Source of the DNA: Fimbriosthenelais zetlandica
Taxonomy: Eukaryota
Direction: 5' to 3'
NCBI GenBank assembly: GCA_977030845.1
Contig: OZ365110.1
Span: 28,086,001 to 28,150,000 of the forward strand
DNA: 64,000 nt
Position numbers and translations under genes: made by a program
The notes under the pieces: model-generated
The model's database searches: none
Seen by the model: only the letters and a program-made list of their open reading frames with translations
Told to the model about the DNA's origin: nothing
Shown here: piece by piece, positions 8,901 to 52,131 of the stretch
Layout of the letters: every line of letters starts with the position of its first letter
Numbering within the stretch: position 1 is the stretch's first letter

Positions 8901-11900
8901 TCCAGGGAAGTTTTGTTCTCTACGTTGAAAAATGTGATAAATATGAATGTGAAAAATGTGCGGAATGTGATAAACAAATACCATTTGGATTTCAAAATTA
9001 ATGGAAACTGTTATCCCTTGTAAATTATTTTTCATTCTACTCTGGAATTATCGATATAACAAAATTCCCACCAAGGCATAAGGATTTCATACAATGATCA
9101 GAGTAGTCTACTATATGGGGTCAGGTAAGAACAAACGTAGTTCACAAATGTCCCAAGGATAATTTTCAAACCAACCAATCACGGTTCATCTTAGGAATGG
9201 GGTACATTCAGACGTATCTAGGTTCACAGCATGAACACTCAACAATAAAAGGAGGTGATATGATTTTAATCAGGAGGTCAGCATGCCCAATGATGATACA
9301 TCACTATCATATTGTTTCTCAGTATCACACCAGTTAAAGGGCCATGCTTCGTTTCAAGACTTACACCAAGCTGTTTTCACTGAGCTTGTTGTTCTTGGGC
9401 TGAAGAAATACAATTGACTATAAACTAACTTCTCGTTATTTCACCTTATTTCACCTCATGAAATATTAGGAAAAATAAATAATTTTCCAAAGTATTTTTT
9501 TTTAAATGTCCATTCTTTGAGCATAACCTTTTTTTTCTAATTTTAGTTCTAAATGAGTGTTTAAAAGAATGTGTGTTGCTGTACATAAAAAGTGAACCCA
9601 AAGCTGAATACACAGATTCCCAAATAAGGTATTTGTGAAATTGTCATATCAAATAATCCCCAAACCAGAATTTTATACTCAAGATTTTTACAGTACCAAG
9701 TGGCATGAAACATGTGATAAATAATTAAGTACTTACATTCAGTCGGCGGGGGAGCCAGTTCGGATTTGGGACTAGCCGACATTTCCTTTTCTTCTGTTTT
9801 TTCTAATCTTTCAGATTGTTCAACTCTCTCTGTTTTACCCACAGCCCCTGTAGACCCGGGAAGGGTGAACTCTTCTGACGACTGAAATTGATAAAATTAA
9901 CATATAAAATCATCGGTGGATGATGTTGGCATTTCCCTAAATGAAAAATGAAGGAGTATTATTAATTTACCTGTTTAAGGTCTTTGTCGATCTGCGCCGT
10001 TATCTCATCCAACAAACTCACATCACCTATCACCCTATTAAATAAATAATAAACATATTTTAAATAAGGTTTTTAAATAGCTTTAAATAAGTTTTCCCAA
10101 TCTAGGATTGCTTAAAAGCCGATGAATCTATTTAGTATACATAATGTAAGTTAAATTTAGCTTACCACTGCGCAGAAGACTCGCATTTCTCCTCCGGTTT
10201 CAAGCCATCCGGTGAGGTTTCTGAAGGAAAGGTTAATTTTATATTGATAAACATGGGATAAACATGATAGCAGCGTGACTGTAGACTGGTACAGTGAGAG
10301 GAGGTGGAGAGGTGGTCAGTTGGTAGAAGTGTATAAAGCCCATTCTACACTATACCGATTTATGATCTGATAAGATCAAAATCTGACATGCAAGATTTGC
10401 CCCCAAATCGCGTCTGATCTGATATGTCAGATCACATGCACACTGTACAGATCTATAAGGGTCAGATCTGGTCCAATCAAGGTTTGGTATAACTCAGATC
10501 TCCATCCACACTACACAGATCTTATAAGATCTGCTGATCTGTACACTTCTCACCACTAAAGATCGTCTCTGATCTTATGCGATCACTTTCGTTTTTTGAT
10601 AGTGATCTTAGTGGCCTTTATTTAATTCAGATCATGATGAGATCGTCCCGATTATGATCTTATCTTCATTCATTCTCATCTTTTGCAGATTTTTAATCTG
10701 ACTTCAATTTGATCTGATGAGATCGTTAAGATCATGAAATCGCACCCCAGATCGGTGTAGTGTAGAACGCGCTTTAGACTCACCTGTCTGTTCCGTTTTA
10801 GCACCTGACCCTTCATCTGTGAGCACCTCTACTGGCGTCTCTTTCTCTTTAGGTTTAGGTGGTGGGAGCAAGAGTGGACGAGGCTCAGGTGGTTTCTCAT
10901 CAGGGCCAAACACATACTGCAAAAGATAATCACAAGATTGTTTAAAACTAAGCTGAAATACATTTAATTCACGACTGGGTTAATTAAATTCCCGAAGCAT
11001 AAAATATAGATTATTTCTTACCTCGACATGAGTGATGAGTAGTTCCACTATTTTGGTCTGGTGGGGCGTGTCCATGAGAGAATTTAACGAGGTAGCACCT
11101 TCACTGAAAAAACAAAATCAAATATATCATTTATCTACTGATCAGCAGTGATCTCTCGGAGAAGAAAGGGTATATAGAGAAGAATGCATCGCAAACCTAC
11201 CTGGGTCGGAGGAGTGTAGGCCCAAACACTATCCCCAAGTTGCTGGCAGACATTTGATTCGTGTCCTCACATTCCGTGACACTAAAATAGACAATTTAAA
11301 TTATTCTGCATTGTTTTATTATATTCACAGATTTCATTAAGGAACTTCAATCCAAAAAAAGCTTCAAATACTAAGAATGTGTATAGAACGGTGGGAATGG
11401 AGTTAGAAATAACTTAGATGCATGGATCATCAATTCTCAATTTATAGAGGTAATACTTCACGAAAACTATGGTTACTCAATATGTAATTTTCCGATCAAA
11501 TAAGGCCTGGATGTTCTCACCGTCTCAGGTGGTGCATGAGGAGGGCCAGCGTCCTGAAGTTACTAGTTGGCAGTGAGGTAACCATACTATTAAGTCGCTG
11601 AACAAGCTTGATTTCATTAGAACTCTCCATCTGAGCATCCTCCTGTAAAAATATGTACAATGAAATTATTATTCTACCAATTGAAAAAAAAGAAAGAATC
11701 AATATCTGAAATTGGTATTTCCGATAGAAGAAGAATAAGAGGGAGGTATATTCAATTCAATTCAATGCTTTTATTCTGGCCATTTACGTCCATAAAAAAT
11801 ATATATACAATCACAGCAAACAATGTAAGAAAATAAAGAATGTGGGTGGAGAAATAAATATACATGTATGTAGGTGGTTATAATTCTCTGATATACCTTG

Positions 11901-47900: not shown

Positions 47901-48971
47901 TGATATAGACTCCATAATGAAACTATATCGTGGTCAATTTCAATAATAGGACTGGTCACTTTTACCTAAGAAAACTAATAAAAAAAATTTAATCCTAAAA
48001 AGGGGGGACCCCATGCTGAATCCGCTTTTGCCGCGGTGGTATACTGCGTGAGCGTCCCCAGGTTATAACGCTGTCTCTGTACCCGAGAAAAACGCTGTGC
48101 TTGTCGCGCGGTGGTATACTGCGGCCGCTCACCGGGTGGGAAGTCAGAAAACTTCCACGGTGGAACAGGCTTTATGGACTGCAGAGAAAGCCATGCGGGA
48201 CGCCTGATGGTTTTCCCGCAGTTCGTGTCGCTCGGGTAGGCCTAGGCCTATCATTTTTATTGGGTACCGGTAATAACCTATTTCCATTTCCCCACATGTG
48301 GCATCATGGCTATGGCATTATTTATTTTTAAAAACACTACTTTTTAATTGATCAGAACCTAAATATTTTTTGTATCCTCAATGCTGCTCCTGCTATGATT
48401 TTAGAATGTGTATTCAGGCCAAAACCCTGAATGTCTGAAAACCAAACAGTCAATGTTGACTGAGTGAGGAGGGGGTGAATGTGCAGGAGACAGAGAGAGG
48501 GTGAGTCACTCCTGAGTTGGTGTATGCATCGCCATCTGCTCCTGCTTCTGCAGCTCCTCCTCATCCTCCACCCCGACCTAAACAAGCACCACAGTCATGG
48601 CCCCCTTTCCCCGCCTCCCCACATCACATATGTACCAACACCAGACCGCTACCGGCCGTGGGATCCCAGCCCCCCGCCGGCCGCGGAGGCCAAATACGCC
48701 GGGGCCAGGCCCAAGAAAAACAAGGCCATTTACATCTTAAATTTTCAATGGTCCTACTATAAATAAATCTTTCAAAAGTTAAAATGGGGTAAAATACACA
48801 TTAATCTGTATTATAAAACGCAAAGAGGTGTTTCTGGAAAGTATTCAAGGTATTGCATGAAGGTTTAGGGAAAAGGAATTACTTGAGGAAGGGTCTTACC
48901 CGTGAATCCGGACCGTGCTTCTTCTTCCCTGTTTTTCCTCGGGAGAAGAGCTTCTTTCCCATTGAAGACAT
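5965..48971 (-). CDS. ARHGAP45: Rho GTPase-activating protein of the ARHGAP45 (HMHA1)/ARHGAP29 (PARG1)/GMIP family: N-terminal helical domain, F-BAR, C1, RhoGAP and Ser/Pro-rich tail. 30 exons, 1277 aa.
   Basis: Exons (minus, 5' to 3'): 48900-48971, 41940-42168, 26407-26553, 26007-26088, 25639-25696, 23744-23813, 22513-22650, 22331-22395, 22093-22137, 21843-21908, 21630-21710, 21360-21539, 20694-20771, 20520-20579, 20342-20398, 16458-16600, 14543-14625, 14142-14354, 13582-13745, 12238-12438, 11897-12091, 11521-11642, 11201-11281, 11022-11103, 10784-10916, 10166-10220, 9971-10034, 9737-9881, 7909-8148, 5965-6449. All introns GT-AG, phases consistent, total 3834 nt. Family motifs: DVRNFSDALGKLKE, AHEKLGEVL, VSEYLMGD, WAKAWAKYTKEILAYVERR, KAWPL, HVFKKLRTPSRCRKCESYVYFHGAEC, GIYRLSGVKSRVEKLCQSFE, MSASNLGIVFGPTLLRP, C-terminal PEYV. 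Probably the single invertebrate co-orthologue of ARHGAP45/29/GMIP. Confidence 0.93.
10336..10774. mobile_element. 439-bp MITE with about 24-bp imperfect TIRs and TA target-site duplication (Tc1/mariner-like; PIF/Harbinger not excluded). GATC-dense interior.
   Basis: Left aagcccattctacactataccgat versus reverse complement of right aagcgcgttctacactacaccgat (3 mismatches). Flanked by TA at 10334-10335 and 10775-10776. No ORF. Confidence 0.8.
10908..12342 (-). other. ARHGAP45: RhoGAP domain (exons 20-25) with intact arginine finger
   Basis: FGVDL..IPVIVQKC..EIDERGL..GIYRLSG..VIANVLKLYLRQLPEPLL..NFRTLALLMHHLRRV..NQMSASNLGIVFGPTLLRP. Confidence 0.93.
12388..13665 (-). other. ARHGAP45: C1 zinc-finger domain split over exons 19-20
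   Basis: HVFKKLRTPSRCRKCESYVYFHGAECAK|CGLTSHKKCLESLHWEC retains the H/C ligand pattern. Confidence 0.9.
16458..22650 (-). other. ARHGAP45: F-BAR (FCH plus coiled-coil) region, exons 7-16
   Basis: LDSLLVRREMGMDIALTWAKAWAKY..ECEFAKGLSKLA..PFQSVYCSALEQD..PLTLQRQEHEKIRK..YKGCVADAN..IRQSDLIMKTVTVTYF..YEPGTQYDEFVRRL. Confidence 0.88.
18781..18837. repeat. Degenerate (CAG/GCA)n trinucleotide microsatellite in RhoGAP intron 15
   Basis: agcagaagaagcagcaacggcagcagcagcaacagcaatagcagcatcagcagtggc. Confidence 0.75.
24225..24359 (-). CDS. Candidate alternative first coding exon of the RhoGAP, encoding a highly acidic peptide
   Basis: CCACC-ATG-G Kozak at 24359. 45 open codons MGDHLISSTPHIDFLCSLFAEEEEEDEFWDEDNDDEEEGLDDDDE end at a phase-0 donor GAG|GTGTGT that fits phase-0 exon 6 (23813). 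A further in-frame ATG lies at 24407. Confidence 0.5.
27253..27273 (+). repeat. Poly-G tract (G7-T-G13)
   Basis: gggggggtggggggggggggg; G-quadruplex-capable. Confidence 0.8.
27503..27578 (-). CDS. Candidate alternative first coding exon of the RhoGAP (MAATSAIWSALSDSHGLSVATWCII-G)
   Basis: ATG at 27578 with an in-frame TAG three codons upstream. 76 nt to a phase-1 donor ATCG|GTAACT matching phase-1 exon 3 (26553). Confidence 0.4.
37382..37446 (+). repeat. G-rich low-complexity tract with many GGG+ runs
   Basis: gggggtggggtggggagggagg..gggggttgggggcggggtgggtc followed by G13. Confidence 0.75.
43926..43992. repeat. Inverted copy of part of the 263-bp unit
   Basis: cgaggagaaatagaatgggaaaagtatactgtgggatttctgcctatgagcttatgcagtagaccacc is the reverse complement of 44856-44922 (2 mismatches). 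Confidence 0.9.
44589..45109. repeat. Tandem duplication of a 263-bp unit (about 2 copies, plus a diverged partial copy at about 44466-44588)
   Basis: gccggtggtctactgcataagctcataggcagaag.. starts at both 44589 and 44852, and the units are near-identical. Confidence 0.9.
45597..46152. promoter_or_regulatory. ETS plus YY1 motif cluster: candidate intronic promoter or enhancer
   Basis: cacttccgacttccgccatctt (two ACTTCCG plus CCGCCATCTT) at about 45597-45618, aagatggcgg at about 45820, ccgccatctt at 46143. Motif evidence only. Confidence 0.45.
46990..47330 (+). repeat. Long C/T-rich polypyrimidine low-complexity tract
   Basis: About 340 nt dominated by ctccc/ctct. The Pro/Leu/Ser-rich ORFs called here are compositional artefacts. 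Confidence 0.75.
48032..48240. repeat. GC-rich repeat related to the 263-bp unit, inverted orientation, with an internal 17-bp direct repeat
   Basis: ggctttatggactgcagag..catgcggga..ctgatggttt (48168-48221) matches the reverse complement of 45055-45109. cgcggtggtatactgcg occurs at 48032 and 48107. Confidence 0.75.
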
Positions 48972-49334: not shown

Positions 49335-50059
49335 ATGGACAGTCAAGGTAAGGATCACAATTGTCATTTTTTGAGAGGTTTCTGTGGTTTATGTGATCAG
49401 CATGTTGATGATTTGATCTGAGCGATAATAGGGGTTTCTCAACTTTCTGATGGTTGAGCTAGTGTAAGTAAACTGTCACTCTATGAATTGCACTTTAATC
49501 CTCCTTGTCACTGAGATGAGTTAAGACCTAAGAATTGGTAAGATAAAATAGCAGAATGTATTGTGACTCTACATATGTATTATTTAATAGAAAATAATAT
49601 TAGTATGCCTACCAGTACCGTATTATTATAATTTATAGTCTAATTTAGGCCTATACTATAGTCTAAGGCTAAGCCAAGGCCCTTGCCCTTGGCAAGGCTC
49701 AGCCACGCCCATGCAGTACCAGGCCATGTTATCATAGAGGTAGAATCTCTACTTCTATGATGATATTATGTATATTATTATATGGCTGATCTATGCCCTT
49801 TTGTCGTTTTGACATTTGTGTATTGATATTTTCAGGATCAAGAAAGCGCAAAGTAGATCAGGGTTCTTCACTTGTGGCTGATCAAAATAATAGATCTGTT
49901 CCTGTGGATTCCCAAGATAAAAGAACAGAACAACAACCAACTGCGAAATACAAACTAGAAGAAGGCTTTTCCTGGTGGACTTGCTTGCAGTATGATATGA
50001 GTCTGGAGAAAACTAAGCCTCAGCCAAAACCTGCAAGACAGGAAAATCATTTTGCTTGA
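49335..50059 (+). CDS. Spliced 78-aa orphan ORF upstream of CYB5RL (candidate microprotein or uORF)
   Basis: Exon 49335-49347 (aacatcATGGACAGTCAAG|gtaagg) joins exon 49836-50059 (ttttcag|GATCAAGAAAGCGC..TGA) in phase 1. Product: MDSQGSRKRKVDQGSSLVADQNNRSVPVDSQDKRTEQQPTAKYKLEEGFSWWTCLQYDMSLEKTKPQPKPARQENHFA. No homology recognised. Confidence 0.5.
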
Positions 50060-50308
50060 GCTTTCCTTTTAACTTATTTATAATAATGGTTATTAAGTGA
50101 TATGCTGTGCAGGTTAAAAGTTTATTTGGGTTGTGTAGGTCTGCACTGTTTTTCATTTGTTTTTCACTAGGCCTATTCGTCAGCCTCAATATTTATTTAA
50201 TAGACGGTACACCTACCGATCCTTACACAATTGAATCCACTTCGCACTATTGCGTAGTAGGCCCTAGTGGTGCCATAAATGACAAGTTAAAACAAAGATC
50301 TACTTGTG

Positions 50309-52131
50309 ATGGAAAACATAACTCATATAACTCAAAACTTGGGTGAAAGTATCACTGACTCTTTAGATCAACACCCTTCGGACCCTCAGCCTGAGAGTTT
50401 GGCTGGAGGCATGGAATCCAACCCTCAATCAGGGAGAATTACCGAACTTTTACCAGAGAAACCCGAGGAGCCACAGCAGAGTGATTGCTGTGGGACTGGC
50501 TGTTCTCCTTGTGTGTTTGACATTTATCAACAAGACATTGAAACATGGGAAAAAGAATGTAGGAGAATTAAGGCAGGAATTCCTCGTACCATAGATACCT
50601 CAAGCAAACAGGTAAGCATTGGGATTCCATTTAATTAAAATAAGGAAAATGACTTGTATGTTATGTGTCTTTGGACCTTTTTCTTTATGTAGAATTATCT
50701 GCTATAATAAAATTGAATTCCTTAGATAATAAACCGTGTTCTTGGTTACAAAATGAAACATTTTTTTCCCCACAGGAAAGTGCTGTATCTCCCTCGGAAT
50801 ATCGTCTATTCACTATTGAATCGGTTGCTCAGGATGCTATGAACACATACATCTACAGGTTTTCTATTCCAAATGGTGGTCGCTTGGGCATCAAAAGTGG
50901 ACAACACCTTGTTCTCATGTAATAATTTATAAATCATTTATTCCGATTATTAAAATTATCAAAAGATCTATGTATTTATGGAAATATTCCCAATTTGCTA
51001 TAATGACAGATATTCGAGAATACATTTCAGTAAGAATTAACTGAATGAAATTTATGTTGTCTAATGTTTGGTTCTTTTTAGGCAGAAAAAGGAAGGGCGA
51101 TCCTTAACTCGACAATACACACCGATAAGTGACATAATGACTGAGGGTTACTTTGATGTCATGATAAAGGTAAAGATATACAGTACAACTTAGCCTTTTG
51201 CAACAATATCCAGAAACATATTTATGTCTGATAGTGAAAGGAAGCATATTAAATTCACATACTCCATTAATTGTTCTAAGTTCTCAAGAGTTAATCGCAA
51301 TCTCTTACAACAGCTTTATGATAATGGATCAATGTCCAAGTACGTGCGGACGTGGTGTGTTGGCGATGAGGTTGAATGGAGGGGCCCTTTCGGGAATTTT
51401 ACTTACACACCAAACAAGGTAAATTTTTTCACACTTTGAATAGATATTTTCAATGGGCATTTTTCAAATCCAAATTCTCTATTTAAATATGTAGCCCTAT
51501 CAGCCTATGTTTACGCTGGATATTTTGTCTCCTCAGTGGCGGCGGGTGTTAATGCTAACAGCTGGCTCTGGTATTGCTCCCATGGCTCAGGTCATTACAA
51601 CGATACTTAACAACGAGGAAGATGAGACCTTCATCAGACTCTGCTATGCCTGTCAAACATACGAGGAAATCCTTATTAAAAATAATATAAACTCCTGGGC
51701 AGACTACTGGAACTTCTCAGTGGCTTTCTTTTTAAGCAAGGTGGATTGAACATTTTCCTAAAACTTGTTAACATTAACATGTGTGTATTTTAAATAGTAG
51801 ATACACAGGGCAAGTGCACAGCCCTCTTACTAGGATTTGTACTTGTTTCTACATTCTCAACGAGAAATTTGTCTTCCATGTTCTTGTAATGAATCCTAAA
51901 ATAGATTTTTATTATATTTTATTTTAGGATTCTGCTGAGAGAGAATGCAAACGTCGTTACGGGGATGACATCAACTACTCCAGAATCACAAAATCAATTG
52001 TCGAGTCAGAACTAGGAGGGAAAGCCAATGATACCCTAGTTTTGATATGTGGCACAAAGTCATTTGATAAGGACATGGTGAACTACTTAAAACGACTGGG
52101 TGTACCGGAAGAAAATTATTTCAAATTCTGA
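50309..52131 (+). CDS. CYB5RL: NADH-cytochrome b5 reductase-like protein (oxidoreductase-like N-terminal Cys motif, FAD-binding and NAD-binding domains), 348 aa
   Basis: Exons 50309-50611, 50776-50918, 51082-51169, 51314-51418, 51537-51740, 51928-52131; 1047 nt, GT-AG. Motifs PEEPQQSDCCGTGCSPCVFDIY, GQHLVL, RQYTPIS, GYFDVMIK, WRGPFG, AGSGIAPM, LICG, YFKF-stop. In-frame TAA at 50288 upstream of the ATG. Alternative start at 50411. Confidence 0.93.

Follow-up and report, generated by a model that had tools for sequence, protein, structure and literature searches.

Location and structure of the microprotein gene

We analyzed a stretch of 64,000 nucleotides (nt) of Fimbriosthenelais zetlandica (assembly GCA_977030845.1, contig OZ365110.1, positions 28,086,001 to 28,150,000, forward strand; hereafter the window), in which a small two-exon gene (49335-50059) is located directly upstream of the gene for the reductase CYB5RL on the plus strand. 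A sequence-only reading of the window had proposed that the small open reading frame (ORF) encodes a microprotein, that it forms a bicistronic unit with CYB5RL, and that alternative splicing switches between the microprotein and two variant products. As judged from the comparisons described below, 49335-50059 is a genuine coding gene and a member of an unnamed, deeply conserved family of animal microproteins. Furthermore, its ORF, encoding a two-exon protein of 78 amino acids (aa), is probably the 5' cistron of the CYB5RL messenger RNA (mRNA).

Coding exon 1 (49335-49347; 13 nt) comprises the ATG and 10 further nt, which encode MDSQ and supply the first base of a Gly codon, and ends in phase 1. 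The ATG at 49335 lies in the context AACATCATGG, with A at -3 and G at +4, and the exon is closed by the consensus donor AAG/GTAAGG (GT at 49348). Intron 1 (49348-49835; 488 nt, phase 1) runs from GTAAGG to TTTTCAG, and coding exon 2 (49836-50059; 224 nt), entered through the acceptor TTTTCAG/G, includes the stop codon TGA at 50057-50059 and completes the 78-aa product. In the stretch of 850 nt that precedes exon 2, the ATG at 49335 with its 13-nt exon was the only phase-1 combination of an ATG and a donor in which the donor was strong. Exon 2 encodes a basic patch, RKRK (49841-49852, within SRKRKVDQ at 49838-49861), which resembles a nuclear localization signal and is nearly invariant in the family, and a conserved core, KYKLEEGFSWWTCLQYDMSLEKTKPQP (49946-50026). 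In the 447-Mb genome, a profile search detected the microprotein gene as a single copy (E = 1.1e-20).

The microprotein ORF ends 249 nt before the ATG of CYB5RL at 50309, and the spacer between the two ORFs (50060-50308) is unconserved and contains three ATGs. The first coding exon of CYB5RL (50309-50611) matches the Pfam family Oxidored-like (PF09791, E = 1.3e-13), carries the motif CCGTGCSPC and possesses a second in-frame ATG at 50411. The rest of CYB5RL (50612-52131) has coding segments near 50776-50916, 51071-51418 (with an internal intron), 51534-51740 and 51913-52128, followed by the stop codon TGA at 52129-52131. These positions were obtained by tblastn with 82 CYB5RL homologues, and the junctions past the first exon are approximate. 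In the relatives, 22-37 aa separate the start of CYB5RL from the CCG motif, and the corresponding distance in the window is 25 aa from the ATG at 50411 and 59 aa from that at 50309. Thus, the former appears to be the more typical start, albeit not decisively. Every sequence feature named in the sequence-only reading (exons, donors, acceptors, stops and variant ORFs) was found where it had been placed. The microprotein and CYB5RL are separate ORFs, as had been stated, with an in-frame TAA at 50288 and further stops intervening. We considered and rejected a fusion of the two by readthrough; the ATG at 50309 shares the frame of exon 2, yet several stops lie between them.

An animal protein family linked to CYB5RL

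The search of 5.8 billion proteins with the exon-2 peptide recovered three small proteins (P0001-P0003; E-values from 8e-13 to 1e-6), all of which contain YKLEEGFSWWTCLQYDMSLEKTKPQP. We built a profile from the exon-2 peptide of the window and these three proteins, and 42 matches were found among 1.84 billion representative proteins, which puts the ORF well outside chance occurrence. All but one of the 42 were 48-124 aa in length; the remaining match, a 636-aa protein aligned over 12 short segments, looks spurious. The family members share two elements. One is the basic patch KRK(R)(D/E) near the N-terminus, in which K and R are kept in at least 90% of the sequences. The other is a C-terminal core of approximately 28 residues with the consensus K-x4-EG[FMY]SWW[TN]C[LM]...[TS][KR]P, in which G, S and both W were invariant in the 42-59 sequences compared and K, R, T, C and P were nearly so. 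The peptide of the window possesses both, namely the N-terminal patch and a core of the form K-x4-EGFSWWTCLQYDMSLEKTKPQP, in which EG[FMY]SWW[TN]C[LM] is followed by [TS][KR]P.

We compared codons among four taxa, namely the window and the loci L001, L003 and L004 (the last being a metagenome scaffold). Over 13 core codons, none of the approximately 33 non-synonymous sites was changed, while each pair of taxa differed at 4-6 of approximately 6 synonymous sites, i.e., at saturation. Over 26 codons, the proportion of non-synonymous differences (pN) was 0.03-0.22, against a proportion of synonymous differences (pS) of 0.77-1.1. On this evidence, selection is on the amino acids of the microprotein, not on DNA or RNA. 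The proposal that the small ORF is real and conserved is thus borne out by the homologues with E-values down to 8e-13, the 42 profile matches and the signature of purifying selection; the checks suggested with it, for conservation upstream of CYB5RL and for selection, likewise came out in its favor, with the ORF kept in that position across phyla and pN well under pS. In the scaffold L004, the first 55 nt recur at 65-120 (within 1-120), over the start of the microprotein exon, which is probably an assembly artefact.

The named members are from the gastropods Littorina saxatilis (KAK7100429.1), Elysia marginata (ElyMa_005360600), Plakobranchus and Bradybaena, the bivalves Sinanodonta woodiana (ACJMK2_041269) and Mactra, and the amphioxus Branchiostoma belcheri (KAI8509551.1). 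All of them are annotated solely as hypothetical or uncharacterised proteins of stand-alone genes. No vertebrate or insect member was identified, the named members being of molluscs and amphioxus. KAK7100429.1, KAI8509551.1, ACJMK2_041269 and ElyMa_005360600 are regarded as true homologues that share the motifs, the two-exon structure and the position upstream of CYB5RL. In the sources searched for these homologues, neither the family nor its linkage to CYB5RL nor a common transcript was noted. Two local repeats were seen at the amphioxus locus (L009): the 3' end of the microprotein carries a repeated HEKSQP...VQNS unit, and, within the Oxidored-like exon of CYB5RL, the segment PLPSDCCGGGCDP is present in three tandem copies at approximately 10130-10240. 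These repeats are either local duplications or assembly artefacts.

Linkage was assessed at L001, L003, L004, L005/L006, L007, L008, L009, L010 (Littorina saxatilis), L011, L012-L017 and the contig of P0042, among which L005/L006, L011 and L012-L017 are contigs assembled from public sequencing runs of three species. At every locus examined, an ORF of the Oxidored-like/CYB5RL type was found downstream on the same strand at a distance of 99-630 nt (249 nt in the window and 109 nt in Littorina), and the locus tags of the microprotein and CYB5RL are adjacent in Sinanodonta woodiana (041269 and 041270). The position directly 5' of CYB5RL, noted at first in the window, is therefore kept across phyla, strand included. 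The CYB5RL sequence of the window is only 43-47% identical to each of its named homologues, and that of L011 is closest to crinoid and hemichordate CYB5RL. The CYB5RL annotations of scallops (P0076, P0078, P0079, P0134 and P0077, of scallops and one Logan contig) are 429-541 aa in length, as against the usual 300-330 aa; a fusion with the microprotein was ruled out as the explanation, the SWW motif being absent from the extended proteins.

The gene structure is shared as well. A phase-1 intron lies 1-3 codons before RKRK in the window, Littorina and amphioxus, with the junctions G/GA TCA AGA AAG, C/AA AAA CGG AAA and T/AC AAC CCC AGG AAG, respectively, and the first exon contributes 13, 10 and 64 coding bases in this order. 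Acceptors in the matching phase were found in L001, L003 and L004. The exon of L003 has no in-frame ATG and therefore needs an upstream exon.

AlphaFold2 with the family alignment predicted a compact strand-helix-helix-strand (beta-alpha-alpha-beta) mini-domain for residues 38-65 of the exon-2 peptide, with a predicted local distance difference test (pLDDT) score of approximately 95, and the N-terminal half of the peptide was modelled at low confidence. This model had no fold match among the AFDB clusters (best E = 2.4) and no match with Z of 2 or above in a wide search of the PDB. The search of PDB sequences yielded only an insignificant match to MSH6 (E = 0.28). The ESM Atlas gave no usable match, its own model of the peptide being disordered, and none of the 42 members belongs to a Pfam family. 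The prediction of a complex between the microprotein and CYB5RL of Sinanodonta (P0004 and P0086) scored 0.00, a value that counts neither for nor against an interaction, as no use was made of the alignments and a disordered model resulted for the partner. In the literature searched, no paper was found that ties CYB5RL to an upstream ORF (uORF), a microprotein or a bicistronic mRNA. The CYB5RL papers found were expression or association lists, and CYB5RL is absent from both the paper on STREMI (PMC13303939) and that on small ORFs of Tribolium. The claim that the microprotein is undescribed thus holds for the sources searched, in which a few annotations list a "hypothetical protein", and the pairing with CYB5RL, like the family itself, seems not to have been described.

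Proposed transcription and translation of the pair

The case for a common mRNA was built on contigs of three species from at least nine runs, in which the small ORF is accompanied by a complete and uninterrupted CYB5RL ORF of 309-330 aa with all three domains (75 and 318 aa in L005/L006, 72 and 309 aa in L011, and 79 and 330 aa in L012-L017). As CYB5RL has introns in the window and in Littorina, these intron-free ORFs represent spliced RNA. The contigs with both ORFs indicate, at the level of assembled sequence, a bicistronic mRNA in the three species. For the window, we infer co-transcription from the conserved gene order and these contigs. The bicistronic part of the sequence-only reading is thus supported by assembled transcripts in the other species and would hold by analogy in the window.

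An alternative is that two tightly packed genes are present, the microprotein having its own mRNA and CYB5RL a transcription start site (TSS) inside or just after the microprotein exon, with assemblers merging the overlapping transcripts. Separate genes are indeed listed in the annotations of Littorina, amphioxus and Sinanodonta, the many AUGs in the spacer would hinder the translation of CYB5RL from a common mRNA, and de Bruijn contigs cannot phase molecules. On the other hand, the spacers of 99-630 nt leave little space between the two ORFs, particularly the 109 nt in Littorina, and neither AATAAA nor ATTAAA, the canonical poly(A) signals, was found in the spacers of the window, L001 and L004 (that of L003 contains a single ATTAAA, located 6 nt ahead of the CYB5RL start). 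Furthermore, in a species represented by ten contigs, each contig with a sufficiently long 5' end includes the small ORF. The shorter contigs are collinear with these but truncated, and two of them end 304 nt before the start, about 31 nt (approximately one k-mer) short of a polymorphic indel. We thus consider two separate genes unlikely.

In the arrangement that we favor, the CYB5RL mRNA would carry the microprotein ORF as its first cistron. Its transcription would begin in a region of approximately 360 nt shared with a divergent gene, intron 1 would be spliced out, and exon 2 would continue unbroken into the first coding exon of CYB5RL. What appears to be the first coding exon of a neighboring gene lies on the minus strand at 48900-48971 (MSSMGKKLFSRGKTGKKKHGPDSR, followed by the donor GTAAGA). 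As the ATG of this neighbor at 48971 is approximately 360 nt from that at 49335, the sequence suggests that the two genes share a bidirectional promoter. Scanning ribosomes would reach the microprotein AUG first and in a good context. A purine was found at -3 in all cases checked, and the microprotein AUG is the first in L011; most scanning ribosomes would therefore be captured there, and the microprotein would be the main cap-dependent product. CYB5RL would then depend on the smaller share of ribosomes that leak past this AUG or reinitiate, or on a minor form of the transcript. That both ORFs are translated and that the KRKR patch directs the microprotein to the nucleus is presumed here, and a functional link to CYB5RL is likewise putative.

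Several observations weigh against this arrangement. The TSS, the splice junctions and the co-transcription in the window are predictions. The contigs, including the Logan contigs of L012-L017 (one species), are de Bruijn graph assemblies, in which molecules are not phased and two overlapping transcripts may have been merged, and therefore do not prove that both ORFs lie on single molecules. The spacers show no depletion of AUGs, with 52 found over ten loci where 51.4 would be expected, and this is a poor fit to efficient leaky scanning or reinitiation. CYB5RL would therefore be translated inefficiently, or via reinitiation, or via a minor isoform, and, with spacers so rich in AUGs, a start site of its own for CYB5RL or a minor splice form is conceivable. 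Finally, the small ORF of the species of L012-L017 has lost both the TKP motif and the otherwise conserved Cys (reading WWTS), and in the contigs L013 and L015, from two runs, a 4-nt deletion of TTAA causes a frameshift directly after the WWTS codons. Thus, the small ORF is apparently dispensable in some lineages. In this lineage, the microprotein appears to be less constrained or decaying, with the shared transcript persisting.

The splice-controlled switch is a different matter. In that model, the donor at 49989 or the skipping of exon 2, each joined to the acceptor at 50170, alternates the microprotein with a 76-aa variant or a 62-aa uORF overlapping CYB5RL, and thereby sets the amount and the N-terminus of CYB5RL. 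The sites exist: GCA/GTATGA follows 49989 and the acceptor AG lies at 50169-50170 behind a good pyrimidine tract, delimiting a hypothetical intron (49990-50170) with its donor GT at 49990, and the variants computed from them are of 76 aa (stop at 50232-50234) and 62 aa (stop at 50344-50346). Other species also have a pyrimidine tract and an AG shortly before the CYB5RL ATG, and the AUG-rich spacers suggest that another route to CYB5RL translation is needed. However, the donor sits between codons of the conserved core with the predicted fold, and the residues beyond it are under purifying selection. GTATGA simply spells codons for (Q/M)-Y-D and is gone where members have L or G there. We detected no conservation of the 76-aa and 62-aa tails, the spacer or the CYB5RL segment 50309-50410, the frames produced by exon skipping were inconsistent between species, and no contig of the relatives lacked the spacer. 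With the donor inside the core, the products unconserved and the spacer kept in the contigs, the switch is unsupported and in our view improbable, and minor isoforms are possible as far as the sequence goes. As a separate observation, the spacers of the window (50150-50175) and of L010 (approximately 9045-9075) both carry CTGTTTTTCAT within a pyrimidine tract that is closed by an AG and lies shortly before the start of CYB5RL. This was the only common spacer element seen, in these two loci, and may be due to chance.

Alternatively, the small ORF may act in cis, its nascent SWWTC...TKPQP stalling the ribosome and gating CYB5RL, with the released peptide being functionless. Conserved Trp lies 13-16 residues before conserved Pro, a spacing that recalls TnaC and SecM-type arrest peptides, and an ORF that comes first in an mRNA must affect the flow of ribosomes to CYB5RL. 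Nevertheless, the distance from the core to the stop varies, with approximately 3 to 47 residues after TKPQP; KRK(R)(D/E) lies 30-60 residues upstream, farther than the ribosome exit tunnel extends; a folded mini-domain is predicted for the core; and 48-124 codons are long for a regulatory uORF. We therefore see little chance that the peptide acts solely in this way, and the predicted fold, together with a KRK patch conserved far from the core and a tail that varies in length, speaks for a protein that is released and acts in trans rather than for a pure arrest peptide.

Known two-protein genes and the significance of the pair

MOCS2 and SNURF-SNRPN are classic bicistronic genes of mammals, and the ORFs of the former overlap and encode two subunits of one enzyme. 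The pair described here is alike in that one gene would specify two distinct proteins with the small one first. It differs from MOCS2 in that the ORFs are 99-630 nt apart, with the link between the two proteins being putative. Closer in kind are MIEF1-MP/MIEF1, ASDURF/ASNSD1, STREMI of SLC35A4 (PMC13303939, in which 14 human transcripts were found to be predominantly polycistronic) and Drosophila Sloth1/Sloth2 (described in PMC9681215), all of which have a small coding ORF under selection 5' of a conventional ORF and a pairing long retained. The microprotein family is nonetheless different from these, bearing no similarity to them in sequence or fold. The upstream ORF is here split by an intron, the partner is CYB5RL, and the translation of both is presumed. 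The conservation of amino acids in a uORF is also known for conserved-peptide uORFs, such as that of the fungal arginine attenuator peptide, MAGDIS of AMD1 and those of plants, as well as in a survey of animals (PMC7530721). Such uORFs tend to be short and to keep the conserved part at a constant distance from the stop, whereas the family described here has a variable tail, a distant N-terminal motif and a predicted mini-domain.

We tentatively entertain a broader reading, possible rather than probable, that the microprotein and CYB5RL are an ancient and obligate two-protein unit that has been encoded on one transcript since before the split of molluscs and chordates. The small, nuclear-targeted protein would work with CYB5RL, for instance with its Cys-rich Oxidored-like domain, or would set the dosage of CYB5RL through translation of the first cistron. 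That such a pair has gone unnoticed would be explained by the lack of an identified counterpart in the vertebrates and insects commonly used as models.

It is rare for a small ORF to be conserved across phyla, and few bicistronic genes are known from animals; the family reported here is a new one with neither a Pfam entry nor a relative of solved structure. Its gene structure and linkage to CYB5RL appear to have been retained between molluscs and a chordate. For annotation, the "5' untranslated region" of CYB5RL would be coding in many invertebrates, and the scattered "hypothetical proteins" belong to one family. CYB5RL, a poorly understood reductase, thereby gains a constant genomic companion, which may provide a lead on its function or regulation.

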